A stretch of DNA of 64,000 bases from contig OZ281501.1 in the NCBI GenBank assembly GCA_965637545.1, positions 3,472,001 to 3,536,000 on the forward strand, written 5' to 3'. Of the stretch, positions 14,628 to 36,851 are shown one piece after another. The stretch comes from Phallusia mammillata (taxonomy: Eukaryota). The first letter of the stretch is position 1. Each line of letters opens with the position of its first letter. The position numbers and the translations under genes are program-made. The notes under the pieces were generated by a model. The model was not told where the DNA came from, did no database searches, and worked only from the letters and a program-made list of their open reading frames with translations.

Positions 14628-15123
14628 CAGGGGTGTCCAACACGTGTCACGCGTGCTAAAAGTGGCACGCAGAGCATTTGAAAATGGCACGCAAGTTTTT
14701 GCACATTCAGATGGTAAACATTAGGATTTGTCAGGCAATTAATATTTTTCTATTGATTTTTTTTGGCCTTTATTCTAACTTCAGTAAAGATGATCAGTAT
14801 CAAGGTTACACAAATCCATTAATTAAATTGGTCGTTTTTAGACTCGATCAGTTTACTTTTAGGCGTTTGAAACTGTCGAATTCTTGTTCATTTCGGGCCT
14901 TTATGCTGTCGTATTATATTCCATGTTATGGATTCTGCGCTTTAATTACATGGCATGCTATAAATAGTTTCTGGAGTATCATAAACATGTTTACTCGCGT
15001 TTGACAACTTTTCTACCGTTAAGACGTTTAAGACATGGTTTGGAAAAAGTACCAAACGTTGGCACGCGAGTATATTTTAAAACCTAGATTGGCACGGCGG
15101 TGCTTTCGAGTTAGACACCCCCG
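14628..15123. mobile_element. hAT-type MITE, 496 bp (unit 1)
   Basis: TIR CAGGGGTGTCCAAC ... GTTAGACACCCCCG (2 mismatches). TSD TCGTAAGT / ATGTAAGT. Unit 3 has the empty site with a single ATGTAAGT (~30708-30715). Confidence 0.88.
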
Positions 15124-15947
15124 ATGTAAGTAATATTTTCAGTGATTGGTGTAATTCGACACAAAATACTTGTTTGCAAGTGAAAATAACAATAACTAGT
15201 GCTGTTAAGCGCAATTATGTTCTTATGTCTCACACCAGATACGTTTGCTATATACCGCTTTCGCGAATATTTAAAACGTAATTTGTGTAAAATTGCTGAC
15301 GGTTTGGGCTATTAAGGTTGGGATGAGGTTTTATAATAAAAATAACAATAAAATCAACCTTAAAACTTAGTTCCTATAACGTTAAATTTAGTTTTTAACC
15401 ATAACCTAGCCTCAATGTTAATTTAAATACCCGCGCTCTTTAGGCCATCTATCGGTATTTAGCAAACCTTTCTACTGTGAGTTATCGTGTTAGTAGCTCT
15501 ACCGTGTTTTACCCTTTGCTGCAAAATGATTTCTGTGGGCCATGTTTCATGTTTACCGTTTTGCGCAAATACGTTGGTCTTGTGGAATTTTGTTATTGAC
15601 CTTTTGTTGATTTTATTATGACGTATAGTTACGTAACACACCACTCATTTGTGTATCATAGATTTGCGCTCCCTACAAAATCGAACCAGTGGCAAATTGA
15701 ATATTACGAGTTATAAATATAACTTAAGAGTTTTTCGGTTTCAACGAAATGGTGTAAAAATGTTGGGCAAAGCCGAAAGTACGGACAATTCAAAACTATT
15801 CAACAAGCATCATCCCTTTCACACTTACATTAGCAATAAAAAGTGTTATGTGACTCAGAAGGGATGATTTGTTGAAATATTCGTAATAAGTCTACATAAC
15901 TATATCTATTATATCGTTATTGTTTATGCAAAAATAAATTTTTTCAG

Positions 15948-16044
15948 CTTCAGAGAGATTTTTTAACTGCTTAAGTATTTGCTTTGATTCGGACCAAGAA
16001 ACGAACGATTTTTTCAATCCGAGAAACGGAGGATTTATTCTCAG
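15948..16044 (+). other. Putative non-coding 5' UTR exon of GPCR copy 1 (equivalents ~23747-23843 and ~31184-31284)
   Basis: TTTTCAG acceptor and GTGAGC donor are retained in all three units, including the diverged unit 3. A second acceptor, TATTTTAG, lies immediately before the signal-peptide ATG. Confidence 0.4.
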
Positions 16045-16333
16045 GTGAGCTATTTTAAACACGACTGTGGTAGTATAGAACTATAATTCAATAGAAAAAA
16101 CATCACTTTGCCGTAACGCAATGTCTACTCTAGGAGTTTATATCATATATTAGTGTAAAAATGTGAAGTAAATCCTGCTCGCAAAATGTCACTTTAAGTA
16201 AAAACGAATACAAGACTATGTTTACCAGAAATACACACAGAGATGCGCCAAAGTTCTAATGGGATTCATTTAGATTGTTTTTGCTTGGTAATAACGGGTT
16301 AATAAATGCTTATTTGTTTGTTCTATTTTAGCA

Positions 16334-19300
16334 ATGAAGATGAATTGGAGTACACTCTTTCTTATCAGCTTATTGTTTGGGGTTCTAAACGCAGCAACAG
16401 AAACTTCATCTAAACTGACTGATCAGAAAGGTATTTGCGACTGTGTATGTGTAAAGTTGTTGTTGTTGTTTGAATTGTGGCTCGTTTTAGTAGGCGCTAA
16501 AATCTTGTCATCATAAATTAGGCTATATGGTTTTGGCTGAATAATTTGGCGCGCCTGACCCATATACAGACATACAAACTCGGTGTTAATTCTTTTGCAA
16601 TAAATTGTGTTAAAATGTTTACCTTTATCAATTGCCAAAATAAAGTCCCGAACGAAATTATGTTGCAGTTGATGCCCAAAAATAAGAACAATGTTAAAAT
16701 CGACCAAACTTTTAAAATATACGAGTGTATGTTGAAAATATATTCGTTAAATTTACCTCTAAAATTACATTAATTTTTCTTTTTTAGGTGATTTATGCAA
16801 CGGTCCATACGACATTATCACGTGCACTTGTCCAGATACCATGTTTAGCTGCGCATGCAGAGAAATTGGTAAATGCAAATGGGGATCTGGGTGCATCCCA
16901 ACAGTATGGCGATACGACAGCATCAATCACTGTGGCGAGTGGAGCGATGAAATAAACTGTCTCCCTGAGGACATCTTCTGCGCATGCGCAAACACCTCTG
17001 AAGGATGCGGTACGGGACGGAAGTGCTACACCAAAGATGAACGCTGCGATGGTAGAGCAGATTGTCATGATGGAAGTGACGAAATGAACTGCACTTGCAG
17101 CTCTGATCAGGTCCCTTGTGAAGGTTACGGTTACGTTGACTCAGTTGCAACACCGTGCATTCATTACACATATATAAACAACAATTACAACGATTGTGGA
17201 GATTGGGGAGACGAACCGAACCTAACTTGCCCAGAGGAGGATTTCAAATGCGATTGTTTTGGCAACGATGACTGTTATGAAGGGTGTGTGGCAAGCGACT
17301 CGAAATGCAATGGTATTCTAGACTGTAGTGACGAAAGTGATGAACGTAACTGCCCGTGTCCTGACAGTACGTTTCGATGTCCATGCGCAAATGCTCTAAC
17401 ATGCCCATTTTCGCCTTGCTATCCTGAAACTTGGCGTTGTAACGGAAGGGGAGACTGTGGTGATTGGAGTGATGAATTAAACTGCACTTGCAAGTCAGAG
17501 CAGTTTGCTTGTGATTGCTACGCCAACCCCGCGACTTGTACAACCAAGCAAGGTTGTATTAGTTTGTCTAAAAGGTGCGACGGTAATCCAGACTGCCAGG
17601 ATGGGGAGGATGAACTGAACTGTACGTGTGACATGTATCAATGCGCTTGTTTTGATAAAAAGTGTTATCCCAATGGATGCATTTCTGTAAATCAGGAGTG
17701 CAACGGCTTTAACGACTGTGGAGACTGGAGCGACGAAGTTAATTGCGACGATATGGCAAAAACTTTCCAGTGCTTGTCTTGCAAGGACAATTGTAGCATC
17801 GAAAATCACCAGCGCATAGAACAGTCACAAGTTTGCAATGGAAAAGCTGATTGTGCTGACGCTAGCGATGAAGCCATCTGCGACTGCAACAATGCTGCCA
17901 GTATTTTGCAATGTGATAACGGAGGTTGCATTCCTGATCGTTGGATTCAGGGAATACTCAATTACTGTAATCTTGGAGGTAACCCAGCTTGTAAAAGGAC
18001 AAACGCGTGGTGTGGCTCAGCTCCTATCTCGATTTGGGATTGCACAGGTCCTTTGGAATTGTTATCATCTATTAACGCAATGCGTATATATGGACATAAA
18101 TGTTCCAGTACAAATCCGGTTTGTGTTGAAAAATGGAGAATTGTCAGTAATCATAGCCAAGAATGTGATGGGCTTTTCCAGTGTGAAGACGGATCGTTTA
18201 TTAACAACCGCTTCTTTTGTGACGTCAACAATGACGTTGATGCTTCTTGTAATGACGACAGCGATGAACTTTGCGGTGGCTTCGGTTTTCAGTGTGCTGG
18301 TCCAAGCAGGAAGGCAGTTTGCATATTACCACAGGCCAATGTTTACGATTCTGAGGCTCAATGTTCTGACCGATCCGATCTTTGCTTCGAAAATGGCGAG
18401 TTTCGGTGTTTTCAATGCTTGGACAAAAAGTTGATTATCTCGCCCAAGCAAGTATGCGACGGTGTAGTCAATTGCTACGATATGTCCGACGAATGCTTAT
18501 GCGCAAACACAACAATCTGCGACGAACTAAGAGGATCATGCTCCCGCAATGAAATTCGCTGTAACGATAACTGTGTTGACATGGGAACAACGCTTTGTAA
18601 TTCATCAGTTGATTGCAGCGGTTTGAACACAAAGTACTGCAGTTGCCATCAAGGTGCAGGCGAAACCATGACATGCAACACTGGAAAGGATCTTAAAATA
18701 GCGCTAAAATGTGACGGGAACCCTGAATGTCTCTTATTTGAGGACGAATGTGAAGCATGTGCACAACCAGCCGCATTTTGTGACCATCCTTGCGTCAATG
18801 AAATCAGAGACATGTGGAAAAACCACCAACAGACAAGCGACGTACGGTTTTGTGACGGCTTGGTTGAGGAGATTTACGGCACCAAACATACTCGAGACTG
18901 TCCTCTTGCGGGGGAACAATTCTGTAACGCGTCTCGTTTTTACTGCATGCGTGCGGATCCTTTAAGCGTTAGTATAAGCATCAATGAAGTGTGCGACGGA
19001 AAAAATGACTGTGACGACGGTTCAGACGAGGAACAGTCACTGTGCAAGGAGTATGTAATGCTATGCGCTGATGGAGAGAAAAACATATCCAAATTACGCG
19101 AGTGCGATGGTGTGTTTGACTGTAAAGATCTTTCGGACGAATCTAAGCAACTCTGCAGCAAAAAACGTTTCGTTTGTGCTTCAGGCAACGTTTTCTCTAT
19201 CGAGATTTCTTTGCTGGAAGACGGAAAGCCGGACTGCGAAGATGGAAGTGACGAATGTGTTTCTCTCTTCTCAGACCGCTACGAAATGATTTCTTCTTCA

Positions 19301-20434
19301 CTATTTCGGGCGTGTTTCTGGATAATGGGGTTTACCGCCTTGCTCGGAAATGCGGCTGTATTCACATCTACAATCAATTTTCTGCTCACCACCAACGCCG
19401 TGCCCAACACCACAAAATGCGCAAACATGTTCATTTTAAACCTTTCTATCGCTGATTTCCTAATGGGGGTATATCTTATAAGCATTGTGTCTGTCGGTGT
19501 AACGTTTCAGGGTGAATATTGTGCTCATGACAAAGTATGGAGGTCAAGTCCTACCTGTTCCCGTTTAGGCGCATTAGCAATTGTCTCTTCTGAGGCATCC
19601 GCATTTACTATGACAGCAATGACCACATATCGATTTATTTCAGTTTACCAACCGTTTACAGCAAAACACATGGACTTTCGTAAAGTAACAGCATTGTCAA
19701 CAGTGACTGCTTGGGGGCTGGCTGGATTACTTGGAGCAGTGCCTCTTTTCAAATCCAAAATCGAGTATTTTCAATGGGACATTTGGTTTCCAAACTATTT
19801 CTTTGGTAAGCAAGTAGTGGAAGTTAAATCTATGATTGGTTTGGCAAAGAAAATCTCAAACTCAACATTGAGCAGCTGGGTAGAGTCAAAACATGTTATT
19901 TCTGAATCCTTTCCGGGTTCAATACGAGGCGAGTTTGGTTATTACGGAGAAACAAGCGTCTGTATGCCGCGCCTGTTTGCCACTTCGAATCAAGGGGCTT
20001 GGGAATATTCGACGTTTATCATCACAATTAACTTTGTTATGTTTCTTTACGTGTTCTTTGTTTACGCCTTCATTTACAAGGAAGGAAACAGAATGAGCCA
20101 ATACCGAAATTCAGATATTAGCGTGAAAATGCAAAAACGCATTTTTCGGCTCATACTGACAGATTTTTGTTGCTGGATTCCTATTTGCATCATGGGGTAT
20201 CTCAGTGTATTTGGTGTAGAAATGCCACCCGATGCTTATGTTGCTAGTGCATGTATTTTGCTACCAATTAACAGTGCAATTAATCCTATGTTGTACTCCA
20301 GAGTCATTGGACAAAGAATAGCGAAATCTAAGCGCTATTTAAGCCAAAAAACGTCTTACACACTGAACTACGTCAGGGGCAATAGCTCATCTAAAACACA
20401 ATCGTCGGTTAAAATTGAGCTTGAAACCCCTTAA
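16334..20434 (+). CDS. LDLa-repeat class A GPCR (LGR/RXFP-like 7TM, no LRR), copy 1, ~1247 aa
   Basis: Exon 16334-16430 encodes signal peptide MKMNWSTLFLISLLFGVLNA; phase-1 intron; exon 16788-20434. About 14 clear and up to ~18 LDLa-like modules (CDG..DC.D.SDE), then 7 TM helices with motifs LLGN, LNLSIADFLMGVYL, W..S..C, SSEAS, SVCMP, TDFCCWIP, LPINSAINP.LY. Confidence 0.93.
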
Positions 20435-20910
20435 AAGCAGATGGAAGTGTTGTAAGCACAATTAGTCCAAAACATCATAAAGCTAGGGCGACTAATGTAG
20501 TGTTTGCCTACTGTTGTTTTGGTGCTATGACTAGGTTTTTCTGCGTTTGTATGCATGTACAATTTTTCAGAAAAGTCTTCATTGACCACATACATTTTTT
20601 CAGCAAAGTTCGATTTGTTTGGTACTTTTTAACTAAGTTTAAAAATTTGCAACGTTTTTTTTGTACAAACTGTTTCCGTGGGTCATTTTATTCACATATG
20701 TGTAATTATTTCCTGAAGTTTTTGCGCAATGTATGCTGTAAAAATTCTGAATTCTGTATTTGTTGTGTACATTGTTTTCACAGTTATAAACCAAGCGTTT
20801 GTAATGAAACTGTAGTCTCTGAAACTTTAAAGGATAATTCGTGGTCTTTAAAACATTTTTCTAAACTATTGCAATTTTATCAGACATTAGACAAATTACT
20901 TTTCCGTAAA

Positions 20911-20916
20911 AATAAA
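20911..20916 (+). terminator. Candidate AATAAA poly(A) signal of GPCR copy 1 (equivalents 28697-28702 and 36579-36584)
   Basis: AATAAA ~480 nt after the stop codon, conserved in all three units. AT-rich background lowers confidence. Confidence 0.35.
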
Positions 20917-21181
20917 GTAGAGACATGAAAAACAAAACTATCGGAATTATATTTTTTTTTCCGTAACTATAAGCTTAGCTCATGACAACGGGAAATATAA
21001 GGGGATTTTTTGGCACGATTTTTAAAATCTGCTATTGTTATTTGTTTATCTTTTTTACTATAACGAAACAAACAATTTTCGGGGAAAACGCATGAAAGAC
21101 TATAGTATCAGTGTTGCATAACAACCCGTCTTCACATTTAAACACTAGAGGAATTTAGTGGACTGGATTTAATCAGTTAAC

Positions 21182-21512
21182 ATGGAAAACACACATAAGG
21201 TATTTATTTCTCAAATTTTATGTTTGCAAATTAAATTATTTAATATTTCAAGCCAGAACTAAAGGGGTAATGATAGTGCAAGTTTATTAATCTCCGTTAT
21301 ACTAAACACCTTAAAACTTTTATCATATTATTATTTAAGGCATGTGGAGTACTAAAAATCTAAAAAAACTAAAATGTAATTTTTTTTGAAAATAAGCATC
21401 ATTTAAACATTTCTTGTTGATTATATGTTGTCAAAGTAAAATGACTGTTTTAATCTTTGATTAGCTGTCCCTTGATGTTGATCTAAATGAGGATTTGCTT
21501 GATTACGGTTGA
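21182..21512 (+). pseudogene. Truncated 5' duplicate of MAD2L1BP (exon 1 plus the start of exon 2), unit 1
   Basis: ATGGAAAACACACATAAG|GT at 21182-21199, acceptor GATTAG at 21464, then LSLDVDLNEDLLDYG* running across the array junction. Confidence 0.85.
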
Positions 21513-22426
21513 AATTGAGTTCACTTTTCTAACTCGAATAAACCGCTATTGAGGCATTTTGCAATATGTCATGTTTTGACTTGATTTGCTACACTAGTCT
21601 ATTTGATAGACATATCTTTGACAGCTCTTTGGATTACAGACCTCTGTGTTGTTTGAGCATGCTGTTGATGATGTCTTAACAAACAGGAAGCATACATTTG
21701 ACAGGCTTATATTAGCGCACAAATTACTTGGAAAGGCCAAATTACGAAAAAGCGTTGTTTGCCTGTTGATAGCTTAAAGCGCTAAACCAATAATGCTTAC
21801 CGATAGGGCAGCCGACAGTTCAATTAGCATAATTGTTCAACTGGGTGGTTAAGTTTTTTAAGGTTTGTTTTCGTTTTGTTTAATGTTGTTTTACTCAATG
21901 GTCGTCTGCATGTTGTTATTGTATTTGAAGGCCGTTTTCAAAAAGTCGCAAATCCGTTTGAAACGTTTTGTAGAATATATTTGAAATGTTTAGATACATT
22001 TAGATATTGGCAAGTATCTTCTTACTAAAAGTGTGCTTCATCCGTTCTCAACAGGCTATTTTAAAATTGTTGCAATTGTTCTAAACTTAGAGAGACAATG
22101 TTTACAAATAGGGTGTTTTTGGCAGGTTTTTCTTGATGCATATTTAGCTTTCAAGACGTGCGTATAAACCACAATCGACAAACGAATGCGGTAATGCAAA
22201 AGGTTGTGTTTATAATGTGGTTTGAAGGATTTGCGTGCAAAATATCTAAAGGGATTTTTCACGTTTTGTTAGACAATTTAAATAGACTGGGCCCAACCAT
22301 ACAGAGTCACAGTTTACGTTAAAATATCTTAGGCTAGGTCAGGCGCAATATAACCAAAGTTGAGGAACAAACGCTTTGAGTAAAGTTTCTTTACACTTTG
22401 CCAAATTGGTAAGAAACTTCGTAAGT

Positions 22427-22922
22427 CAGGGGTGTCCAACACGTGTCACGCGTGCCAAAAGTGGCACGCAGAGCATTTGAAAATGGCACGCAAGTTTTTG
22501 CACATTCAGATGGTAAACATTAGGATTTGTCAGGCAATTAATATTTTTCTATTGATTTTTTTTGGTCTTTATTCTAACTTCAGTAAAGATGATCAGTATC
22601 AAGGTTACACAAATCCATTAATTAAATTGGTCGTTTTTAGACTCGATCAGTTTACTTTTAGGCGTTTGAAACTGTCGAATTCTTGATCATTTCGGGCCTT
22701 TATGCTGTCGTATTATATTCCATGTTATGGATTCTGCGCTTTAATTACATGGCATGCTATAAATAGTTTCTGGAGTATCATAAACATGTTTACTCGCGTT
22801 TGACAACTTTTCTACCGTTAAGACGTTTAAGACATGGTTTGGAAAAAGTACCAAACGTTGGCACGCGAGTATATTTTAAAACCTAGATTGGCACGGCGGT
22901 GCTTTCGAGTTAGACACCCCCG
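22427..22922. mobile_element. hAT-type MITE, 496 bp (unit 2; duplicated copy of 14628-15123)
   Basis: Same TIRs, TSD and position as in unit 1. Confidence 0.88.
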
Positions 22923-24132
22923 ATGTAAGTAATATTTTCAGTGATTGGTGTAATTCGACACAAAATACTTGTTTGCAAGTGAAAATAACAATAACTAGTG
23001 CTGTTAAGCGCAATTATGTTCTTATGTCTCACACCAGATACGTTTGCTATATACCGCTTTCGCGAATATTTAAAACGTAATTTGTGTAAAAATGATGACG
23101 GTTTGGGCTATTAGGGTTGGGATGAGGTTTTATAATAAAAATAACAATAAAATCAACCTTAAAACTTAGTTCCTATAACGTTAAATTTAGTTTTTAACCA
23201 TAACCTAGCCTCAATGTTAATTTAAATACCCGCGCTCTTTAGGCCATCTATCGGTATTTAGCAAACCTTTCTACTGTGAGTTATCGTGTTAGTAGCTCTA
23301 CCGTGTTTTACCCTTTGCTGCAAAATGATTTCTGTGGGCCATGTTTCATGTTTACCGTTTTGCGCAAATACGTTGGTCTTGTGGAATTTTGTTATTGACC
23401 TTTTGTTGATTTTATTATGACGTACAGTTACGTAACACACCACTCATTTGTGTATCATAGATTTGCGCTTCCTACAAAATCGAACCAGTGGCAAATTGAA
23501 TATTACGAGTTATAAATATAACTTAAGAGTTTTTCGGTTTCAACGAAATGGTGTAAAAATGTTGGGCAAAGCCGAAAGTACGGACAATTCAAAACTATTC
23601 AACAAGCATCATCCCTTTCACACTTACATTAGCAATAAAAAGTGTTATGTGACTCAGAAGGGATGATTTGTTGAAATATTCGTAATAAGTCTACATAACT
23701 ATATCTATTATATCGTTATTGTTTATGCAAAAATAACTTTTTTCAGCTTCAGAGAGATTTTTTAACTGCTTAAGTATTTGCTTTGATTCGGACCAAGAAA
23801 CGAACGATTTTTTCAATCCGAGAAACAGAGGATTTATTCTCAGGTGAGCTATTTTAAACACGACTGTGGTAGTATAGAACTATAATTCAATAGAAAAAAC
23901 ATCACTTTGCCGTAACGCAATGTCTACTCTAGGAGTTTATATCATATATTAGTGTAAAAATGTGAAGTAAATCCTGCTCGCAAAATGTCACTTTAAGTAA
24001 AAACGAATACAAGACTATGTTTACCAGAAATACACACAGAGATGCGCCAAAGTTCTAATGGGATTCATTTAGATTGTTTTTGCTTGGTAATAACGGGTTA
24101 ATAAATGCTTATTTGTTTGTTCTATTTTAGCA

Positions 24133-27100
24133 ATGAAGATGAATTGGAGTACACTCTTTCTTATCAGCTTATTGTTTGGGGTTCTAAACGCAGCAACAGA
24201 AACTTCATCTAAACTGACTGATCAGAAAGGTATTTGCGACTGTGTATGTGTAAAGTTGTTGTTGTTGTTTGAATTGTGGCTCGTTTTAGTAGGCGCTAAA
24301 ATCTTGTCATCATAAATTAGGCTATATGGTTTTGGCTGAATAATTTGGCGCGCCTGACCCATATACAGACATACAAACTCGGTGTTAATTCTTTTGCAAT
24401 AAATTGTGTTAAAATGTTTACCTTTATCAATTGCCAAAATAAAGTCCCGAACGAAATTATGTTGCAGTTGATGCCCAAAAATAAGAACAATGTTAAAATC
24501 GACCAAACTTTTAAAATATACGAGTGTATGTTGAAAATATATTCGTTAAATTTACCTCTAAAATTACATTATTTTTTCTTTTTTAGGTGATTTATGCAAC
24601 GGTCCATACGACATTATCACGTGCACTTGTCCAGATACCATGTTTAGCTGCGCATGTAGAGAAATTGGTAAATGCAAATGGGGTTCTGGGTGCATCCCAA
24701 CAGTATGGCGAAACGACAGCATCAATCACTGTGGCGAGTGGAGCGATGAAATAAACTGTCTCCCTGAGGACATCTTCTGCGCATGCGCAAACACCTCTGA
24801 AGGATGCGGTTCGGGACGGAAGTGCTACACCAAGGATGAACGCTGCGATGGTAGTGCAGATTGTCATGATGGAAGTGACGAAATGAACTGCACTTGCAGC
24901 TCTGATCAGGTCCCTTGTGAAGGTTACGGTTACGTTGACTCAGTTGCAACACCGTGCATTCATTACACATATATAAACGACAATTACAACGATTGTGGAG
25001 ATTGGGGAGACGAACCGAACCTAACTTGCCCAGAGGAGGATTTCAAATGCGATTGTTTTGGCAACGATGACTGTTATGAAGGGTGTGTGGCAAGCGATTT
25101 GAAATGCAACCATATTCCAGACTGTAGTGACGGAAGTGATGAACGTAACTGCCCGTGTCCTGACAGTACGTTTCGATGTCCATGCGCAAATGCTCTAACA
25201 TGCCCATTTTCGCCTTGCTATCCTGAAACTTGGCGTTGTAACGGAAGGGGAGACTGTGGTGATTGGAGTGATGAATTAAACTGCACTTGCAAGTCAGAGC
25301 AGTTTGCTTGTGATTGCTACGCCAACCCCGCGACTTGTACAACCAAGCAAGGTTGTATTAGTTTGTCTAAAAGGTGCGACGGTAATCCAGACTGCCAGGA
25401 TGGGGAGGATGAACTGAACTGTACGTGTGACATGTATCAATGCGCTTGTTTTGATAAAAAGTGTTATCCCAATGGATGCATTTCTGTAAATCAGCAGTGC
25501 AACGGCTTTAACGACTGTGGAGACTGGAGCGACGAAGTTAATTGCGACGATATGGCAAAAACTTTCCAGTGCTTGTCTTGCAAGGACAATTGTAGCATCG
25601 AAAATCACCAGCGCATAGAACAGTCACAAGTTTGCAATGGAAAAGCTGATTGTGCTGACGCTAGCGATGAAGCCATCTGCGACTGCAACAATGCTGCCAG
25701 TATTTTGCAATGTGATAACGGAGGTTGCATTCCTGATCGTTGGATTCAGGGAATACTCAATTACTGTAATCTTGGAGGTAACCCAGCTTGTAAAAGGACA
25801 AACGCGTGGTGTGGCTCAGCTCCTATCTCGATTTGGGATTGCACAGGTCCTTTGGAATTGTTATCATCTATTAACGCAATGCGTATATATGGACATAAAT
25901 GTTCCAGTACAAATCCGGTTTGTGTTGAAAAATGGAGAATTGTCAGTAATCCAAGCCAAGAATGTGATGGGCTTTTCCAGTGTGAAGACGGATCGTTTAT
26001 TAACAACCGCTTCTTTTGTGACGTCAACAATGACGTTGGTGCTTCTTGTAATGACGACAGCGATGAACTTTGCGGTGGCTTCGGTTTTCAGTGTGCTGGT
26101 CCAAGCAGGAAGGCAGTTTGCATATTACCACAGGCCAATGTTTACGATTCTGAGGCTCAATGTTCTGACCGATCCGATCTTTGCTTCGAAAATGGCGAGT
26201 TTCGGTGTTTTCAATGCTTGGACAAAAAGTTGATTATCTCGCCCAAGCAAGTATGCGACGGTGTAGTCAATTGCTACGATATGTCCGACGAATGCTTATG
26301 CGCAAACACAACAATTTGCGACGAACTAAGAGGATCATGCTCCCGCAATGAAATTCGCTGTAACGATAACTGTGTTGACATGGGAACAACGCTTTGTAAT
26401 TCATCAGTTGATTGCAGCGGTTTGAACACAAAGTACTGCAGTTGCCATCAAGGTGCAGGCGAAACCATGACATGCAACACTGGAAAGGATCTTAAAATAG
26501 CGCTAAAATGTGACGGGAACCCTGAATGTCTCTTATTTGAGGACGAATGTGAAGCATGTGCACAACCAGCCGCATTTTGTGACCATCCTTGCGTCAATGA
26601 AATCAGAGACATGTGGAAAAACCACCAACAGACAAGCGACGTGCGGTTTTGTGACGGCTTGGTTGAGGAGATTTACGGCACCAAACATACTCGAGACTGT
26701 CCTCTTGCGGGGGAACAATTCTGTAACGCGTCTCGTTTTTACTGCATGCGTGCGGATCCTTTAAGCGTTAGTATAAGCATCAATGAAGTGTGCGACGGAA
26801 AAAATGACTGTGACGACGGTTCAGACGAGGAACAGTCACTGTGCAAGGAGTATGTAATGCTATGCGCTGATGGAGAGAAAAACATATCCAAATTACGCGA
26901 GTGCGATGGTGTGTTTGACTGTAAAGATCTTTCGGACGAATCTAAGCAACTCTGCAGCAAAAAACGTTTCGTTTGTGCTTCAGGCAACGTTTTCTCTATC
27001 GAGATTTCTTTGCTGGAAGACGGAAAGCCGGACTGCGAAGATGGAAGTGACGAATGTGTTTCTCTCTTCTCAGACCGCTACGAAATGATTTCTTCTTCAC

Positions 27101-28233
27101 TATTTCGGGCGTGTTTCTGGATAATGGGGTTTACCGCCTTGCTCGGAAATGCGGCTGTATTCACATCTACAATCAATTTTCTGCTCACCACCAACGCCGT
27201 GCCAAACACCACAAAATGCGCAAACATGTTCATTTTAAACCTTTCTATCGCTGATTTCCTAATGGGGGTATATCTTATAAGCATTGTGTCTGTCGGTGTA
27301 ACGTTTCAGGGTGAATATTGTGCTCATGACAAAGAATGGAGGTCAAGTCCTACCTGTTCCCGTTTAGGCGCATTAGCAATTGTCTCTTCTGAGGCATCCG
27401 CATTTACTATGACAGCAATGACCACATATCGATTTATCTCAGTTTACCAACCGTTTACAGCAAAACACATGGACTTTCGTAAAGTAACAGCATGGTCAAC
27501 AGTGACGGCTTGGGGGTTCGCTGGATTACTTGGAGCAGTGCCTCTTTTCAAATCCAAAATCGAGTATTTTCAATGGGACATTTGGTTTCCAAACTATTTC
27601 TTTGGTAAGCAAGTAGTGGAAGTTAAATCTATGATTGGTTTGGCAAAGAAAATCTCAAACTCAACATTGAGCAGCTGGGTAGAGTCAAAACATGTTATTT
27701 CTGAATCCTTTCCGGGTTCAATACGAGGCGAATTTGGTTATTACGGAGAAACAAGCGTCTGTATGCCGCGCCTGTTTGCCACTTCGAATCAAGGGGCTTG
27801 GGAATATTCGACGTTTATCATCACAATTAACTTTGTTATGTTTCTTTACGTGTTCTTTGTTTACGCCTTCATTTACAAGGAAGGAAACAGAATGAGCCAA
27901 TACCGAAATTCAGATATTAGCGTGAAAATGCAAAAACGCATTTTTCGGCTCATACTGACAGATTTTTGTTGCTGGATTCCTATTTGCATCATGGGGTATC
28001 TCAGTGTATTTGGTGTAGAAATGCCACCCGATGCTTATGTTGCTAGTGCATGTATTTTGCTACCAATTAACAGTGCAATTAATCCTATGTTGTACTCCAG
28101 AGTCATTGGACAAAGAATAGCGAAATCTAAGCGCTATTTAAGCCGAAAAACGTCTTACACACTAAACTACGTCAGGGGTAATAACTCATCTAAAACACAA
28201 TCGTCGGTTAAAATTGAGCTTGAAACCCCTTAA
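24133..28233 (+). CDS. LDLa-repeat class A GPCR, copy 2, ~1247 aa
   Basis: Exons 24133-24229 and 24587-28233; intact frame; differs from copy 1 at about 17 residues. Confidence 0.93.
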
Positions 28234-28960
28234 AAGCAGATGGAAGTGTTGTAAGCACAATAAGCCCAAAACATTACAAAATTAAGGCGAATAATGTAGT
28301 GTTTGCCTACTGTTGTTTTGGTGCAATGACTAGGTTTCCATATTTTTAATAAAAAGCCTTTATTAACTACAAACATGCTTCAGCAATAAAATTCGATTTG
28401 TTTGATACTTTGTTACTAAGTTTAAAAATTTGCAATGTATTTTTTTGTACAAACTGTTTCCGTGGGTCATTTTATTCACATATGTGTACTTCATTTGCTG
28501 AAAGTTTGTGCGCAATGTATGCTGTAAAAATTCTGTTTTCTGTATTTGTTGTGTACATTGTTACCACAGTTTTGAAACAAGCGTTTGTACTGAAAGTGTG
28601 TAGTCTCCGATTCTTTTAGGTATAATTTGTGGCCTTTAAGACATTTTTGAAATATCGCAATATTATCAGACATTAGAGAACTTACTTTTCCGTAAAAATA
28701 AAGTGGAGACATGAAAAACAAAACTATCGGAATTATAATATCTTTGCGGTAACTATAAGCTTAGCTCATGACAACGGGAAATATAAGGGGATTTTTTGGC
28801 ACGATTTTTAAAATCTGCCATTGTTATTTGTTTATCTTATAACGAAACAAAAAGATTTCGGGGAAAACGCATAAAAACTATACTATCAGTGTTGCGAAAC
28901 AACCCGTTATCGCATTTTAAACTCTAGAGGAATTTAGTGGAGTGGATTTAATTAGTTAAC

Positions 28961-29290
28961 ATGGAAAACACACATGAGGTATTTATTTCTCAAATTTTAT
29001 GTTTGTAAATTAAATTATTTAATATTTCAAGCCAGAACTAAAGGGGTAATGATAGTGCAAGTTTATTAACCTCCATTATACTAAACACCTTAAAACTTTT
29101 ATCATATTATTATTTAAGGCATGTGGAGTACTAAAATTCTTAAAAAAATTAAAATGTATTTTTTTGAAAATAAGCATCATTTAAACGTTTCTTGTTGATT
29201 ATATGTTGTAAAAATGAAATGACTGTTTTAATCTTTGATTAGCTGTTCCTTAATGTTGATCTAAATGAGGATTTGCTTGATTACGGTTGA
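28961..29290 (+). pseudogene. Truncated 5' duplicate of MAD2L1BP, unit 2
   Basis: MENTHE|GT at 28961-28978, acceptor at 29242, then LFLNVDLNEDLLDYG*. Confidence 0.85.
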
Positions 29291-31516
29291 AATTGAGTTC
29301 ACTTTTATAACTCGAAAGAACCGCTATTGAAGCATTTTGTAATATGTCATGTTTTTTCCTCTGCTCATTCTGGGCAAACGGATCAATTACTTGACTTTAC
29401 ATGCAGAAAATTGACGTGTTGCAAACAGATACATCCAAATGAATAGAATTTCATTTATGGCCGTTATAAATTAAATGGTTTTAGTCTAAATTGAATTTGA
29501 AACCGTTTACAATATCCCTTGCAAAACAATCCCTCAATGGATTGCGTTTTCGGGATAATAGGAAAAGGTCGCAAGACATTTGACCTGGAAACCCTGTGGA
29601 CAAAACGGTCGAATTTCTTTATTGTCGTTTATGCAGTGGAAAATAGAAACGCGTAACCTTATACCCAGCTATGGGTTTTTCACGACAGGAAAATCTTTAC
29701 ATGGAGACAGGCTGACATTAGCGCTTTCCTTGAAATACCGTTCAAGACCCGCCCGAATGGCCTTTGCTATTTGAGCAAAAATCTACAGAAAACCGTATTC
29801 GCCAACTGTGTTGACAGGTGGAATCATATGTCCTTCCTTAAGAGTAACTCGAATAAACTCTTAAGTGTAGTGATGGCTTGATGTGCTACACTAGTCTATT
29901 TGATAGACATATCTTTGACAGCTCTCTGGATTACAGACCTCTGTGCGGTTTGAGCATGCTATTGATGATGTCTTAGCAAACAGGAAGCTTGCATTCGACA
30001 AGCTTATATATAAGCTATATTGGCGCACAAATTACTTGGAAGGGCCAAATTACGAAAAATTGTTGTTTGCCTGTTTATAGCTTAAAGCGCTAAACCAATA
30101 ATGCTTAACGATAGGGCAGCCGACAGGTTCAACTGTTTGGTTAAGTTTTATAATGTTTGTGTTCGTTTTGTTTGACAGTTGTTTACTCAATGGTCGCATG
30201 CATTGTTTTCATTGTATTTGAAAGCCGTTTTCAAAAAGTCGCAAATCAATTTGAAACGTTTTTTAGAATATTTTTGAAATATGTATGTACACTCAGATAT
30301 TGCCTAGTATCTTTTTGCTAAAAGTGTGCTTCATCTGTTTCAAAACCGCGCCATTGCTCAATGGGCTATTTTTTAAATAGTTGCAATTGTTATAAAACTA
30401 GAGAGACAGTGTTCGCTTAGGGTGTTTTTAAGCGGTTTTTCTTAATGCATATTTAGCTTTTAAGACGTACGTATAAACCACAATCGACATACGTACGTGG
30501 TAATGCAAGAGGTTATGTTTGTAATGTGGCTTGAAGGATTTGCGTGCAAAATATCTAAAGGGTTTTTCCACGTTTTGTTAGACCATTTAAATAGACTTGG
30601 CCCAACCATGCAGAGTCGCAGTTTACGTTAAAATATCGTAGGCGAGGTCAGGTGCAATATAACTTTGATTAGAGTTTCTTTACACTTTGCCAAAATGGTA
30701 AGAAAAAATGTAAGTAATATGTTCAGTGACAGGTGTAATTCGATAAAAAACATGTGAGTTATCGTGCTAGTAGCTCCGCCGTGTTTTACCCTTTGCTGCT
30801 ATATATGATTTCTGTGGGGAATATTTCATGTTTACCGTTTTGCGCAAATGCGTTGGTCCTGTGGAATTTTGTTATTGACCTTCTGTTGATTTTATTATGA
30901 CGTACAGTTACGTAACAAACCGCGAAGTTGTGTATCAAAAGTTTGTGCTCCCCACAAAATCTGACCAGTGGCAAATGGAATATTACGAGTTATAAATATA
31001 ACTTAAGAGTCGTTTTTTGGGTTTCAAATGAATGGTGCAAAATTGTTGGGCGTTGCCAAAAGACCGGACCATTTAAAGGTGTTATGTGACTCAGAAGGGA
31101 TGATTTGTTGAAATAATCGTAATAAGTCCACATAACTATATCTATTATATTTTTATTGTTTATGCAAAAATAACTTTTTCCAGCTTTAGAGAGATTTTTT
31201 TTAACTGCTAAAGTGTTTGCTTTGATTCGGACTAAGAAAAGGACGATTTTTTCAATCCAAGAAACCAAGAGAAATCATTTTTGGGTGAGCTAATTTAAAA
31301 CACGACTGTGGAAGTATAGAAATGCAATTCAATAGAAAATAAAATCATGTTGGCGTAACTCAATGCGTTTCTAGGGATTTATATCATACATTAATGTGAA
31401 AATTTGGAGTAAGTCCTTATCGCAAAATGCCACTTTAAGTAAAAAATAATACAAGACAAAGTTTACGGGAAACACACACAGAGACGCGCCAAAGTTAAAA
31501 TGCGATTCATTTAGAT

Positions 31517-31940
31517 CAGTGGTTCCCAAACTTTTTCATATTTTTTTCAAAACGGTCCCTTTGCCATTATTTCGAGGGCTCGCGGTCCTTAAGCCTAAAT
31601 GTGTATTTCATAAAAAACGAATATTGATTGCAGGATTTTAGTTAGTTATGCAAAATTGCACATAACAATCATCTAAAGACAGCACGTGACATCACAAACA
31701 GGACAAAAAACATTACAATTGTGCGCGAACAATTGCTTTTTTGATAGTTGTCATTCAATAAAGGCCATTGTTTAGCAATGGAGACAGTCGATTCTCAATT
31801 CTACTTTGATTTAAACTTATTTAGTGGCACAATTACTGACGCCAAATAAGATTATAGAATTTCTTCAACCGCTTCGCGGTCCCTCCAAAATTGCCTCACG
31901 GACCCCTAAAGGACCGCGGACCCCAGTTTGGGAACCGCTG
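31517..31940. mobile_element. hAT-type MITE, 424 bp, specific to unit 3
   Basis: TIRs CAGTGGTTCCCAAACT ... AGTTTGGGAACCGCTG. Perfect TSD ATTTAGAT. Units 1 and 2 have the empty site (CATTTAGATTGTT, ~16268 and ~24067). Confidence 0.95.
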
Positions 31941-32012
31941 ATTTAGATTGTTTTTGCATGGTTATAACGGGTTAATAAATGCTTATTTGTTTGTTCCATT
32001 TTAGCAACAAAG

Positions 32013-35000
32013 ATGAATTGGAGAACACACTTCCTTATCTGCCTATTGTTTGGGGTTCTAAACGAAGCAACAGAAACTTCGCCTAAGTTGACAGATCAGA
32101 AAGGTAATTGCGACTGTGTATGTGTAAAGTTGTTTAAACTCGAGGCTCGCTTTGGTGAGCTATAGGTGGCTCTATTTTCATGTCACCATAAATTATATAG
32201 TTTTGGCCGAATAGTTCGGGGCGCCTGACCCATATACAGACATACAAACACCGTGTTATTTTTTTACAATAAATTGTGTTAAAATGTTTACCTTTACCAA
32301 TTGCCAAAATAAAATCGAGAAAAATTAGTTGTGTTGCAGTTGTTGCCAAAAGTTAAAATAATGTTAAAATCAACAAACGTTCAAAATATACTGGTGTATG
32401 GGGAAAATATATTCGTTAAATTTACCTCTAAATTTACTTGATTATTTTTCTCTTGACAGGTGATTTATGCAACGGTCCATACGACAATATCACGTGCACT
32501 TGTCCGGATACCATGTTTAGCTGCGCATGCAGAGAAATTGGTAAATGCAAATGGGGATCTGGGTGCATCCCAACAGTATGGCGAAGTGACAGCATCAATC
32601 ACTGTGGCGAGTGGAGCGATGAAATAAACTGTCTCCCTGAGGACATCTTCTGCGCATGCGCAAACACCTCTGAAGGATGCGGTACGGGACGGAAGTGCTA
32701 CACCAAGCATGAACGCTGCGATGGTAGTGCGGATTGTCATGATGGAAGTGACGAAATGAACTGCACTTGCAGCTCTAAACAGGTCCCTTGTGAAGGTTAC
32801 GGATACGTTGACTCAGTTACAACACCGTGCATTGATTACACATATATAAACGACAATTACAACGATTGTGGAGATTGGGGAGACGAGCTGAACCTAACTT
32901 GCCCAGAGGAGGATTTCAAATGCGATTGTTATGGCAAAGATGACTGTTATAAAGGGTGTGTGGCAAGCGACTCGAAATGCAACCATATTCCAGACTGTAG
33001 TGACGGAAGTGATGAACGTAACTGTCCGTGTCCTGACAGTACGTTTCGATGTCCATGCGCAAATGCTCTAACATGCCCATTTTCGCCTTGCTATCCTGAA
33101 ACTTGGCGTTGTAACGGAAGGGGAGACTGTGGTGATTGGAGTGATGAATTAAACTGCACTTGCAAGTCAGAGCAGTTTGCTTGTGATTGCTACGCCAACC
33201 CCGCGACTTGTACAACCAAGCAAGGTTGTATTAGTTTGTCTAAAAGGTGCGACGGTAATCCAGACTGCCAGGATGGTGAGGATGAACTGAACTGTACGTG
33301 TGACATGTATCAATGCGCTTGTTTTGATAAAAAGTGTTATCCCAATGGATGCATTTCTGTAAATCAGCAGTGCAACGGCTTTAACGACTGTGGAGACTGG
33401 AGCGACGAAGTTAATTGCGACGATATGGCAAAAACTTTCCAGTGCTTGTCTTGCAAGGACAATTGTAGCATCGAAAATCACCAGCGCATAGAACAGTCAC
33501 AAGTTTGCAATGGAAAAGCTGATTGTGCTGACGCTAGCGATGAAGCCATCTGCGACTGCAACAATGCTGCCAGTATTTTGCAATGTGATAACGGAGGTTG
33601 CATTCCTGATCGTTGGATTCAGGGAATACTCAATTACTGTAATCTTGGAGGTAACCCAGCTTGTAAAAGGACAAACGCGTGGTGTGGCTCAGCTCCTATC
33701 TCGATTTGGGATTGCACAGGTCCTTTGGAATTGTTATCATCTATTAACGCAATGCGTATATATGGACATAAATGTTCCAGTACAAATCCGGTTTGTGTTG
33801 AAAAATGGAGAATTGTCAGTAATCATAGCCAAGAATGTGATGGGCTTTTCCAGTGTGAAGACGGATCGTTTATTAACAACCGCTTCTTTTGTGACGTCAA
33901 CAATGACGTTGATGCTTCTTGTAATGACGACAGCGATGAACTTTGCGGTGGCTTCGGTTTTCAGTGTGCTGGTCCAAGCAGGAAGGCAGTTTGCATATTA
34001 CCACAGGCCAATGTTTACGATTCTGAGGCTCAATGTTCTGACCGATCCGATCTTTGCTTCGAAAATGGCGAGTTTCGGTGTTTTCAATGCTTGGACAAAA
34101 AGTTGATTATCTCGCCCAAGCAAGTATGCGACGGTGTAGTCAATTGCTACGATATGTCCGACGAATGCTTATGCGCAAACACAACAATCTGCGACGAACT
34201 AAGAGGATCATGCTCCCGCAATGAAATTCGCTGTAACGATAACTGTGTTGACATGGGAACAACGCTTTGTAATTCATCAGTTGATTGCAGCGGTTTGAAC
34301 ACAAAGTACTGCAGTTGCCATCAAGGTGCAGGCGAAACCATGACATGCAACACTGGAAAGGATCTTAAAATAGCGCTAAAATGTGACGGGAACCCTGAAT
34401 GTCTCTTATTTGAGGACGAATGTGAAGCATGTGCACAACCAGCCGCATTTTGTGACCATCCTTGCGTCAATGAAATCAGAGACATGTGGAAAAACCACCA
34501 ACAGACAAGCGACGTGCGGTTTTGTGACGGCTTGGTTGAGGAGATTTACGGCACCAAACATACTCGAGACTGTCCTCTTGCGGGGGAACAATTCTGTAAC
34601 GCGTCTCGTTTTTACTGCATGCGTGCGGATCCTTTAAGCGTTAGTATAAGCATCAATGAAGTGTGCGACGGAAAAAATGACTGTGACGACGGTTCAGACG
34701 AGGAACAGTCACTGTGCAAGGAGTATGTAATGCTATGCGCTGATGGAGAGAAAAACATATCCAAATTACGCGAGTGCGATGGTGTGTTTGACTGTAAAGA
34801 TCTTTCGGACGAATCTAAGCAACTCTGCAGCAAAAAACGTTTCGTTTGTGCTTCAGGCAACGTTTTCTCTATCGAGATTTCTTTGCTGGAAGACGGAAAG
34901 CCGGACTGCGAAGATGGAAGTGACGAATGTGTTTCTCTCTTCTCAGACCGCTACGAAATGATTTCTTCTTCACTATTTCGGGCGTGTTTCTGGATAATGG

Positions 35001-36136
35001 GGTTTACCGCCTTGCTCGGAAATGCGGCTGTATTCACATCTACAATCAATTTTCTGCTCACCACCAACGCCGTGCCCAACACCACAAAATGCGCAAACAT
35101 GTTCATTTTAAACCTTTCTATCGCTGATTTCCTAATGGGGGTATATCTTATAAGCATTGTGTCTGTCGGTGTAACGTTTCAGGGTGAATATTGTGCTCAT
35201 GACAAAGAATGGAGGTCAAGTCCTACCTGTTCCCGTTTAGGCGCATTAGCAATTGTCTCTTCTGAGGCATCCGCATTTACTATGACAGCAATGACCACAT
35301 ATCGATTTATCTCAGTTTACCAACCGTTTACAGCAAAACACATGGACTTTCGTAAAGTAACAGCATGGTCAACAGTGACGGCTTGGGGGTTCGCTGGATT
35401 ACTTGGAGCAGTGCCTCTTTTCAAATCCAAAATCGAGTATTTTCAATGGGACATTTGGTTTCCAAACTATTTCTTTGGTAAGCAAGTAGTGGAAGTTAAA
35501 TCTATGATTGGTTTGGCAAAGAAAATCTCAAACTCAACATTGAGCAGCTGGGTAGAGTCAAAACATGTTATTTCTGAATCCTTTCCGGGTTCAATACGAG
35601 GCGAATTTGGTTATTACGGAGAAACAAGCGTCTGTATGCCGCGCCTGTTTGCCACTTCGAATCAAGGGGCTTGGGAATATTCGACGTTTATCATCACAAT
35701 TAACTTTGTTATGTTTCTTTACGTGTTCTTTGTTTACGCCTTCATTTACAAGGAAGGAAACAGAATGAGCCAATACCGAAATTCAGATATTAGCGTGAAA
35801 ATGCAAAAACGCATTTTTCGGCTCATACTGACAGATTTTTGTTGCTGGATTCCTATTTGCATCATGGGGTATCTCAGTGTATTTGGTGTAGAAATGCCAC
35901 CCAATGCTTATGTTGCTAGTGCATGTATTTTGCTACCAATTAACAGTGCAATTAATCCTATGTTGTACTCCAGAGTCATTGGACAAAGAATAGCGAAATC
36001 TAAGCGCTATTTAAGCCGAAAAACGTCTTACACACTGAACTACGTCAGGGGTAATAGCTCATCTAAAACACAATCGTCGGTTAAAATTGAGCTTGAAACC
36101 CCTCAAAACAGATGGAAGTGTTGTAAGCACAATTAG
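32013..36136 (+). CDS. LDLa-repeat class A GPCR, copy 3, ~1255 aa
   Basis: Exon 32013-32103 (MNWRTHFLICLLFGVLNEATETSPKLTDQK) and exon 32460-36136. The first ATG is lost. The stop is replaced by CAA, adding QNRWKCCKHN. Confidence 0.92.
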
Positions 36137-36851
36137 TCCAAAACATCATAAATCTAGGGCGATTAATGTAGTATTTGCCTACTGTTGTTTTGGTGGTATA
36201 ACTAGGTTTTTCTGCGTTTGTATGCATGTACAATTTTTCAGAAAAGTCTTCATTGACCACATACATTTTTTCAGCAAAGTTCGATTTGTTTGGTACTTTT
36301 TAACTAAGTTTAAAAATTTGCAATGTTTTTTTTGTACAAACTGTTTCCATGGGTCATTTTATTCACATATGTGTGCATCATTTGCTGAAAGTTTGTGCGC
36401 AATGTATGCTGTAAAAATTCTGTTTTCTGTATTTGTTGTGTACATTGTTACCACAGTTTTGAAACAAGCGTTTGTACTGAAAGTCTGTAGTCTCTTTTAG
36501 GTATAATTTGTGGCCTTTAAGACATTTTTTGAAATATCGCAATATTATCAGACATTAGACAACTTACTTTTCCGTAAAAATAAAGATGAGACATGAAAAA
36601 CAAACTATCGGAATTATAATATCTTTTCCGTAACTATAAGCTTAGCTCATGACAACGGGAAATATAAGGGGATTTTTTGGCACGATTTTTAAAATCTGCT
36701 ATTGTTATTTGTTTATCTTTTTTACTATAACGAAACAAACAATTTTCGGGGAAAACGCATGAAAAACTATAGTATCAGTGTTGCATAACAACCCGTCTTC
36801 ACATTTAAACACTAGAGGAATTTAGTGGACTGGACTTAATCAGTTAACAAC

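Follow-up and report, generated by a model that had tools for sequence, protein, structure and literature searches.

What kind of receptor is encoded by the threefold tandem repeat in a 64,000-nucleotide stretch of the Phallusia mammillata genome (NCBI GenBank assembly GCA_965637545.1, contig OZ281501.1, positions 3,472,001 to 3,536,000; the whole of this stretch is the window in what follows)? Each repeat unit holds one gene on the + strand, and its product combines a long array of LDL receptor class A (LDLa) modules with a seven-transmembrane (7TM) domain that follows them directly, without the leucine-rich repeats (LRRs) that characterize LGR-type G-protein-coupled receptors (GPCRs). All three genes, which are paralogous and lie in tandem, belong to the tunicate LDLRR-GPCR family, which is still an orphan one, and they show every defining feature of it that could be tested. 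The family was described from Ciona by Kamesh, Aradhyam and Manoj (2008; BMC Evol Biol 8:129; PMC2396169) as LDLa repeats on a transmembrane domain like that of the relaxin/INSL3 receptors, lacking LRRs and having no known ligand; the first-pass annotation of the window had mentioned such LRR-less orphans from Ciona, and that paper bears this out. No later paper using the term LDLRR-GPCR was found in the literature searched.

The architecture is unambiguous in its two main parts. Pfam assigns the window protein to Ldl_recept_a at E=2e-56 and to 7tm_1 at E=7e-19, and apart from overlapping LDLa-like families it reports nothing else of substance; at these E-values chance resemblance is no concern. 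The ectodomain contains 111 Cys in 837 residues. For the module count it was cut into 19 Cys-rich segments, each scanned against Ldl_recept_a: seven of the 19 lie above the curated Pfam cut-off, five more have E-values of 5e-5 to 4e-4, and four are weak (E 0.014-0.39), with about three Cys-rich stretches, in exon-3 residues 362-450 and 654-706, unrecognized by the profile. Of the 19 segments, then, 12 are solid modules (E<=5e-4) and 16 are detectable at all. The 'up to ~18' modules of the first-pass annotation were therefore right as to a long array, and stand as the upper reading of a softer count.

The modules are not alike along the array. Many of the N-terminal ones carry eight Cys, with an added C-x-C pair, and the last three have four. 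Modules 1-7 are most similar to one another, which fits internal duplication, and they are the most variable in number among paralogues. Within the tunicate family, no part of the protein is better conserved than modules 12-13, with 72-82% identity to 20 paralogues as against 54% for the 7TM domain; this two-module core is present in all tunicate members examined (Ciona, Phallusia) and in the members from ENA assemblies introduced below, and is absent from the ctenophore protein.

At its C-terminal end the array runs almost into the membrane. Between the end of the last module, at residue 823, and the start of the first transmembrane helix (TM1), at about residue 838 (exon-3 numbering), there is a gap of 14 residues, where about 15 had been read off at first. 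The LRRs that would stand here in an LGR were reported missing from the outset, and none was found: strict and loose LRR regular expressions gave no match in any of the three copies, and Pfam detected no LRR family, either in the window protein or among 26 relatives. The same Pfam scan did pick up LRRs in three positive controls: RXFP1 of a turtle, a GRL101-like protein of Littorina and an LGR with LRRs from the same genome.

The 7TM domain among LGRs and the extent of the family

The 7TM domain has the features of rhodopsin-class membership, the 7tm_1 profile and the activation microswitches, and within that class it sides with the LGRs. A phmmer search against the PDB ranked RXFP1 (3e-28), TSHR (1e-21) and LHCGR (4e-17) at the top, with LGR4 at 5e-7 and the best non-LGR match at 5e-8. 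With a profile built from the family, solved structures separated more widely: RXFP1 reached 3e-39, TSHR 3e-30 and LGR4 3e-14, against 2e-10 for non-LGR receptors. The last three modules and the 7TM domain were modelled as one piece by AlphaFold2 (AF2); the model, with a predicted local distance difference test (pLDDT) score of 65.9, reaching 75-88 in the helices and staying below 50 at the tip of extracellular loop 2 (ECL2), found LGR-family chains at all of ranks 1-31 in Foldseek. In the ESM Atlas, looked up for one paralogue, feature matches were to generic rhodopsin GPCRs and uninformative, and structure matches, to GRL101-like and LGR4/5 clusters, give a lead only.

Trees were computed under LG+C20+F+G4, the named outgroups coming from a homology search begun with a ctenophore relative. 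LGRs and LDLa receptors come together in a supergroup (support 98/95) when two rhodopsin receptors of the same genome that are not LGRs serve as outgroups, and a grouping away from LGR/RXFP was not seen. A 100/100 branch has all LRR-less LDLa-GPCRs on one side and RXFP1, the glycoprotein hormone receptors (GPHR) and the LRR-bearing GRL101-like receptors on the other. The 7TM domain is thus LGR-related and belongs to a clade of LRR-less LDLa-GPCRs of its own, not nested in RXFP or the type C LGRs. What had been called an RXFP/LGR-type domain is of LGR type by phmmer, profile, Foldseek and tree alike, but does not lie inside RXFP. The tunicate members form a clade in two trees (94/97 and 99/96), which includes named Ciona, Styela and Phallusia proteins. 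The closest LRR-bearing relative that we found is a single-exon LGR of the same genome (L062:739-2364; G000 C4:25770847-25772472), which is sister to the LRR-less clade (89/77) and has a short ECL2 with the motif C-L-P-K-I-F.

How large is the family? A search of the genome with the 7TM domain gave at least 107 matches (107 scored of 532 candidates), all at E<1e-98, about 90 of them in stop-free frames of 966-1448 codons. A degenerate 30-nt pattern for the TM6 motif, allowing up to two mismatches, hit 140 sites in the genome and none in the reversed control. Judged from these sequence matches, the family comprises about 140 loci in this genome. They lie mostly on G000 contigs C3 (0.3-19 Mb), C5 (1.2-3.1 Mb), C1 (2.1-5.7 Mb) and C6, many of them in tandem arrays with a spacing of 7-10 kb. 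Twenty sampled paralogues share the architecture, including the absence of LRRs, and are 45-57% identical to the triplet, which forms its own 100/100 clade. The stem of that clade is long, and its sister group (98/90) is this genome's main radiation; the triplet is an early side branch. The expanding family proposed at first is borne out by the number of loci; the triplet itself, whose exon 3 appears to have been homogenized by gene conversion (see below), gives no sign of fresh diversification.

Outside this genome assembly the nearest proteins are LDLa+7TM proteins of Ciona intestinalis, with 48% identity over the 7TM domain; next come those of Phallusia mammillata, Ciona savignyi and Styela clava. 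One P. mammillata protein (P0121) matches the genome at 98% identity. The gene plan of our locus recurs in Ciona, where a locus has a 32-codon signal exon followed by a single large one, the copies again lying in tandem. At one Ciona intestinalis locus (AP043567.1 18067670-18094269; L055) the NCBI model of LOC144751251 (P0001) seems to skip the 7TM stretch next to its ectodomain exon (L055:12822-13919, 87% identity); as it uses the 7TM domain of the next tandem copy, the model may be chimeric across two genes. Hundreds of single-ORF (open reading frame) family members (P0035-P0120, P0144-P0239) were also found in ENA/JGI assemblies of metagenome type (e.g. ERZ25067582, ERZ27241785), where their contigs reach 2.5 Mb. 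These are probably tunicate in origin, as they carry the tunicate core modules.

A candidate switch at the membrane and its alternatives

What can be said about the function of these tandem LDLRR-GPCR paralogues? We think it likely that they are signalling GPCRs operated by an ECL2/hinge switch like that of RXFP1, a mechanism that we infer from the parts of the protein that do not vary. Motif conservation was scored over 35 family members. Each of the microswitches D2.50, R3.50, C-W-x-P, N-P-x-x-Y and Y5.58 is kept in 35/35 or 33/35 of them, and the disulfide cysteines of TM3 and ECL2 are invariant or nearly so. In the 14-residue hinge, E-M-I is invariant in 35/35, and its M-I aligns with the hydrophobic pair Leu402/Leu403 of RXFP1, both required for signalling there (10.1101/2022.01.22.477343). 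All LGRs share an ECL2 motif of the form C-hydrophobic-P-hydrophobic, and in RXFP1 Phe564 and Leu566 of this loop plug the orthosteric site and are required for signalling, which the substitution L566D kills (10.1101/2022.01.22.477343). In our family the motif reads C-[MLV]-P-R, invariant as C-x-P-R in the 35 members, and keeps the first three positions of the LGR motif, the fourth being Arg. In copy 1 the loop that carries it is 88 residues long, as against 26-33 in RXFP1 and GPHR, owing to an insertion of about 60 residues that AF2 modelled, at modest confidence, with two helices. Keeping microswitches, hinge and ECL2 motifs across 35 divergent members would be costly for a mere anchor.

On the proposed mechanism, the distal LDLa modules, variable in number and sequence, would capture a protein ligand, the calcium-caged acidic pocket of the module binding basic side chains. 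Ligand binding would be passed on to the helices by a switch composed of the conserved proximal modules, the hinge with its E-M-I and the ECL2 with its C-M-P-R-L-F, and in RXFP1 and the other LGRs this switch would have its homologue in that of ECL2 and hinge. In RXFP1 the LRRs autoinhibit, and the 7TM domain alone signals at about 70% of maximum (10.1101/2022.01.22.477343); here the restraint that LRRs give might be supplied by the ECL2 insertion, the proximal modules or both. That the invariant ECL2 Arg could contact an LDLa acidic pocket intramolecularly is an attractive idea only.

Several observations weigh against this interpretation. All members of the family are orphan receptors. Their DRY motif reads [FY]-R-[LF], with F/Y instead of D/E at position 3.49, and the fourth position of the LGR ECL2 motif, Leu566 in RXFP1, is an invariant Arg, so that the switch may work differently. 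The AF2 model supports no docking of an LDLa module on the helix bundle, and that of the mid-ectodomain (residues 362-710) was unusable, with a pLDDT of 40.6. The ratio of non-synonymous to synonymous substitution rates (dN/dS) among the three copies is 0.3-0.4, a value that under gene conversion says little on selection. The RNA evidence for the locus, set out below, has a low depth of 3-5 and comes from coded runs, and transcripts of copy 1 are inseparable from those of copy 2 where covered.

Could the 7TM domain nonetheless be mere support for an endocytic, scavenger or decoy receptor, its LDLa array clearing cargo and its helices serving as an anchor, driving internalization through arrestin or being constitutively active? 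The ligand-binding repeats of LRP2, VLDLR and LDLR are strong profile matches of the array, the DRY motif is without its D/E, and the constitutive activity of LRR-stripped RXFP1 (about 70% of maximum, as noted above) could be carried over to a family that has no LRRs. The remaining microswitches, the TM3-ECL2 cysteines and the hinge and ECL2 motifs are nevertheless invariant over 35 divergent members, and Pfam found neither an EGF/YWTD propeller nor a cytoplasmic NPxY-type uptake module in the window protein, which leaves such a receptor an unlikely explanation.

Very unlikely is a receptor for relaxin- or insulin-like peptide hormones working as RXFP1/2 or GRL101 do. Although RXFP1 is the best match among solved structures and has the hinge pair and the C-x-P of ECL2 in common with our protein, the LRR domain, which is the relaxin site in RXFP1, is absent, the 100/100 branch lies between the two 7TM domains, and some 140 paralogues are far above any hormone system's need. 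Kamesh et al. (2008; PMC2396169) came to the same conclusion for Ciona.

Three genes and their transcripts

The locus consists of three direct repeat units (~13186-20985, ~21577-28786 and ~29287-36667) of about 7.8 kb each, in a window free of N runs. In each unit one very long frame stays open for 1197-1232 codons from its first in-frame start, and each gene has three exons (Table 1): one for the 5' untranslated region (5'UTR), a signal-peptide exon of 32 codons, and a single exon of about 3.65 kb for the entire ectodomain and the 7TM domain. Exon 2 was first spotted by aligning the regions upstream of the long frames, as a hydrophobic piece followed by a GT and, some 357 nt on, by an AG; its translation is a signal-peptide-like N-terminus with a hydrophobic core and then a small-residue site. 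By sequence comparison, the GT/AG splice sites are retained in all three copies, and the exon-3 frames are stop-free across 3 x 1214 codons. The triplication with all copies intact, as first annotated, therefore holds.

Table 1. Features of the three receptor genes, in window positions. Gene coordinates of copy 2 are those of copy 1 plus 7799.
Copy	Feature	Position	Strand	Description and evidence
1	5'UTR exon	~15949-16044	+	at least 96 nt, 5' end approximate; donor GT at 16045 (GTGAGC); X2 RNA contig
1	Exon 2	16332-16430	+	ATG at 16334, 32 codons + 1 base; translation, spliced on both sides in X2 contig
1	Intron 2	16431-16787	+	357 nt, GT..AG, phase 1; X2 RNA contig
1	Exon 3	16788-20434	+	1214 codons + stop; mature ectodomain, hinge, 7TM, tail; open frame and Pfam
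1	LDLa-type module array	16790-19258	+	19 Cys-rich segments
1	Two-module core (modules 12-13, residues 497-571)	18278-18502	+	paralogue identity; also at the corresponding position of the other two copies
1	Three membrane-proximal LDLa modules and 14-residue hinge with E-M-I	18902-19300	+	Pfam E 2e-6, 2e-6, 7e-8
1	Rhodopsin-class 7TM domain, LGR type, microswitches intact	19301-20299	+	sequence, profile, fold
1	ECL2 region	19742-20014	+	88 residues, ends C-M-P-R-L-F; alignment with RXFP1, GPHR
2	5'UTR exon	23748-23843	+	homology; 99.5% identical to copy 1
2	Exon 2	24131-24229	+	ATG at 24133; identical to copy 1
2	Exon 3	24587-28233	+	intact, 1214 codons; own private bases in RNA contigs
3	5'UTR exon	31185-31284	+	homology, ~87% identity; donor GT retained
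3	Exon 2	32005-32103	+	first ATG changed to ACA; second ATG at 32013 usable (30 codons)
3	Exon 3	32460-36136	+	intact; stop changed from TAA to CAA and 1-nt deletion, giving 10 extra codons

Are the genes expressed? Two RNA-like sequencing runs of one study (X1 and X2) bear on this point, and two further runs (X5 and X6) cover introns and flanks and are DNA. One contig of X2 runs from the 5'UTR exon through exon 2 into exon 3, and its joins fall exactly on GT..AG sites: the joint 16428|16786, which a 2-nt ambiguity allows to be placed at 16430|16788, skips 357 nt, and 96 nt lying 5' of exon 2 match the window from 16013 and end at 16044, before the GTGAGC donor. The X1 and X2 contigs are exon-only, except for a short high-copy repeat in intron 2. 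They carry five bases private to copy 2 (homologous to 17299, 17301, 18153, 18154 and 18240), and the X2 contig carries one base found only in copy 3 (homologous to 20231). Thus, at least one copy, with copy 2 as the best match, is transcribed and spliced, and copy 3 probably is transcribed too, so the lack of expression that the first-pass annotation had named as counting against its proposal is not what we find. The assignment of transcripts to a copy is a probable one, since the sequenced individuals may differ from the assembled one.

The repeat in intron 2 deserves a separate word. It is a short fragment of a very-high-copy repeat at 16547-16578, with a counterpart in each of the other two copies and a summed contig depth of 123,720 in run X5 as against about 950 around it, and is found in the RNA-like runs too. 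Contigs leave it into GGGATTCGTCC-like sequence.

The history of the triplet is written in its pattern of identities. In the upstream DNA, exon 2 and intron 2, copy 3 is 85-88% identical to copies 1 and 2, which are themselves 99.4-100% identical in upstream DNA and intron. In exon 3, copy 3 reaches 95.5% over modules 1-4 (copy 1 against copy 2: 97.5%), 99.8% over modules 5-18 and 99.0% over the 7TM domain, where alleles are common to copies 2 and 3. In the 3' flank it is 87-93% identical to the other two, and these are 87.6% identical to each other. Such a mosaic, with exon 3 near-identical and flanks and introns diverged, points to gene conversion that was confined to exon 3 and has homogenized it among the copies. 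Positive selection on the distal modules was considered as well and was rejected: amino-acid differences cluster in modules 1-4 because of the gene-conversion mosaic, as the synonymous differences cluster there too (dS 0.05-0.08 vs 0.007), with dN/dS at 0.36-0.58.

The same pattern bears on whether there are three living genes at all. An assembly artefact from collapsed or expanded haplotypes, or a set of dead recent duplicates, might be suspected from the near-identity of copies 1 and 2 in upstream DNA and intron, from the capacity of gene conversion to keep dead copies intact-looking for a time and from the loss of the first ATG and the stop codon in copy 3, but it is scarcely credible given the mosaic of differences (between copies 1 and 2 in modules 1-4 and the 3' flank, and in the flanks of copy 3), the DNA contigs of two further runs that show copy-specific variants side by side, the spliced RNA contigs with copy-2 and copy-3 bases, the uninterrupted exon-3 frames, and changes in copy 3 that leave a usable in-frame ATG and merely add 10 residues.

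Around the genes little else was recognized: Rfam and tRNA scans of the window gave no match, nor did Pfam for the ORFs flanking the three-gene array. A search of the genome with Pfam PF06581 (p31comet) gave no match, with the controls silent too.

Relation to known receptor systems

Among the GPCR expansions of those invertebrates that are closest to the vertebrates, this family, with some 140 loci, ranks with the largest; it has been orphan since 2008. For such a family the locus offers a clean, expressed and fully resolved gene model, and the comparison of about 35 members singles out parts that can be tested: the hinge motif, the ECL2 Arg, the 60-residue ECL2 insertion and the two-module core. 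RXFP1 depends on its LDLa module to be activated and on its LRRs to be autoinhibited, so that a relative that naturally does without LRRs is useful for comparing how LDLa modules act on a 7TM domain.

One may also ask what such a repertoire is for. In Ciona, the expressed sequence tags (ESTs) of LDLRR-GPCRs come mostly from haemocytes, and Kamesh et al. (2008; PMC2396169) speculated on a sensor role for lipoproteins, microbial products or cationic proteins, a guess that the first-pass annotation repeats. Tentatively, the roughly 140 LDLa-GPCR genes might form a diversified recognition system (immune, chemosensory or for self/non-self), in which variable distal modules would read ligands of cationic-protein, lipoprotein or microbial nature and signalling would use an ECL2/hinge switch resembling that of RXFP, and the LRR-less, long-ECL2 lineage might be ancient and shared with ctenophores instead of having arisen in tunicates; this broad picture is doubtful rather than probable. 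The class of ligand and an immune or chemosensory role are suggested by analogy and by the Ciona haemocyte ESTs.

Among known systems, the Ciona LDLRR-GPCRs are the closest. They have LDLa repeats directly on a relaxin/INSL3-type 7TM domain, no LRRs, a lineage-specific expansion, the same exon plan, tandem copies and the core modules. They differ in having 1-10 LDLa modules where our proteins have 16-19, and in numbering 14-15 confirmed members and 14 'LGR-like' ones (PMC2396169) as against about 140 loci here, and the triplet is without a one-to-one Ciona orthologue. Beyond the literature that we read are the number of modules, the size of the family in this species and the ctenophore relatives with a shared long ECL2.

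RXFP1 and RXFP2 (type C1) are the best relatives of solved structure, with LDLa in the ectodomain, the hydrophobic hinge pair and an ECL2 running G-Y-Y-G...C-x-P. Unlike them, the Phallusia receptors have no LRRs and no single LDLa module with a linker, their ECL2 is about 60 residues longer, Arg replaces Leu566, the coding sequence of ectodomain and 7TM domain lies in one exon, and they belong to another clade. GRL101 of Lymnaea and the GRL101-like receptors (type C2) resemble them in carrying several LDLa modules on an LGR-type 7TM domain, and some family members are named 'GRL101-like' in databases. GRL101-like receptors, however, have LRRs between LDLa modules and 7TM domain, as checked in the Littorina protein, as well as a short ECL2, and stand across the 100/100 branch. 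With LDLR, LRP and VLDLR the family has calcium-cage LDLa modules in long tandem arrays in common, as reflected in the profile matches discussed above; it differs from them in lacking an EGF/YWTD propeller, in having seven helices and not one, and in the many modules with eight Cys or without the third and fourth.

Finally, two ctenophore proteins annotated as 'GRL101-like' (Bolinopsis microptera P0207 and Mnemiopsis leidyi P0240) combine LDLa modules with a 7TM domain, have no LRR and an ECL2 of 100 residues, agree with the tunicate family in the proximal module and hinge pattern, and fall into the same clade. Outside the ctenophores they match tunicate members best, with LRR-bearing GRL101-like proteins and RXFP1 further down. 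They differ from the tunicate receptors in their few LDLa modules, the lack of the modules 12-13 core, an ECL2 motif that reads C-L-H-K-L-F, and a very long branch. Going by the sequences, the link would reflect either an ancient LRR-less lineage or a long-branch effect. If confirmed, the size of the family and its ctenophore relatives would change the view, held since 2008, of LDLRR-GPCRs as a small innovation specific to tunicates.

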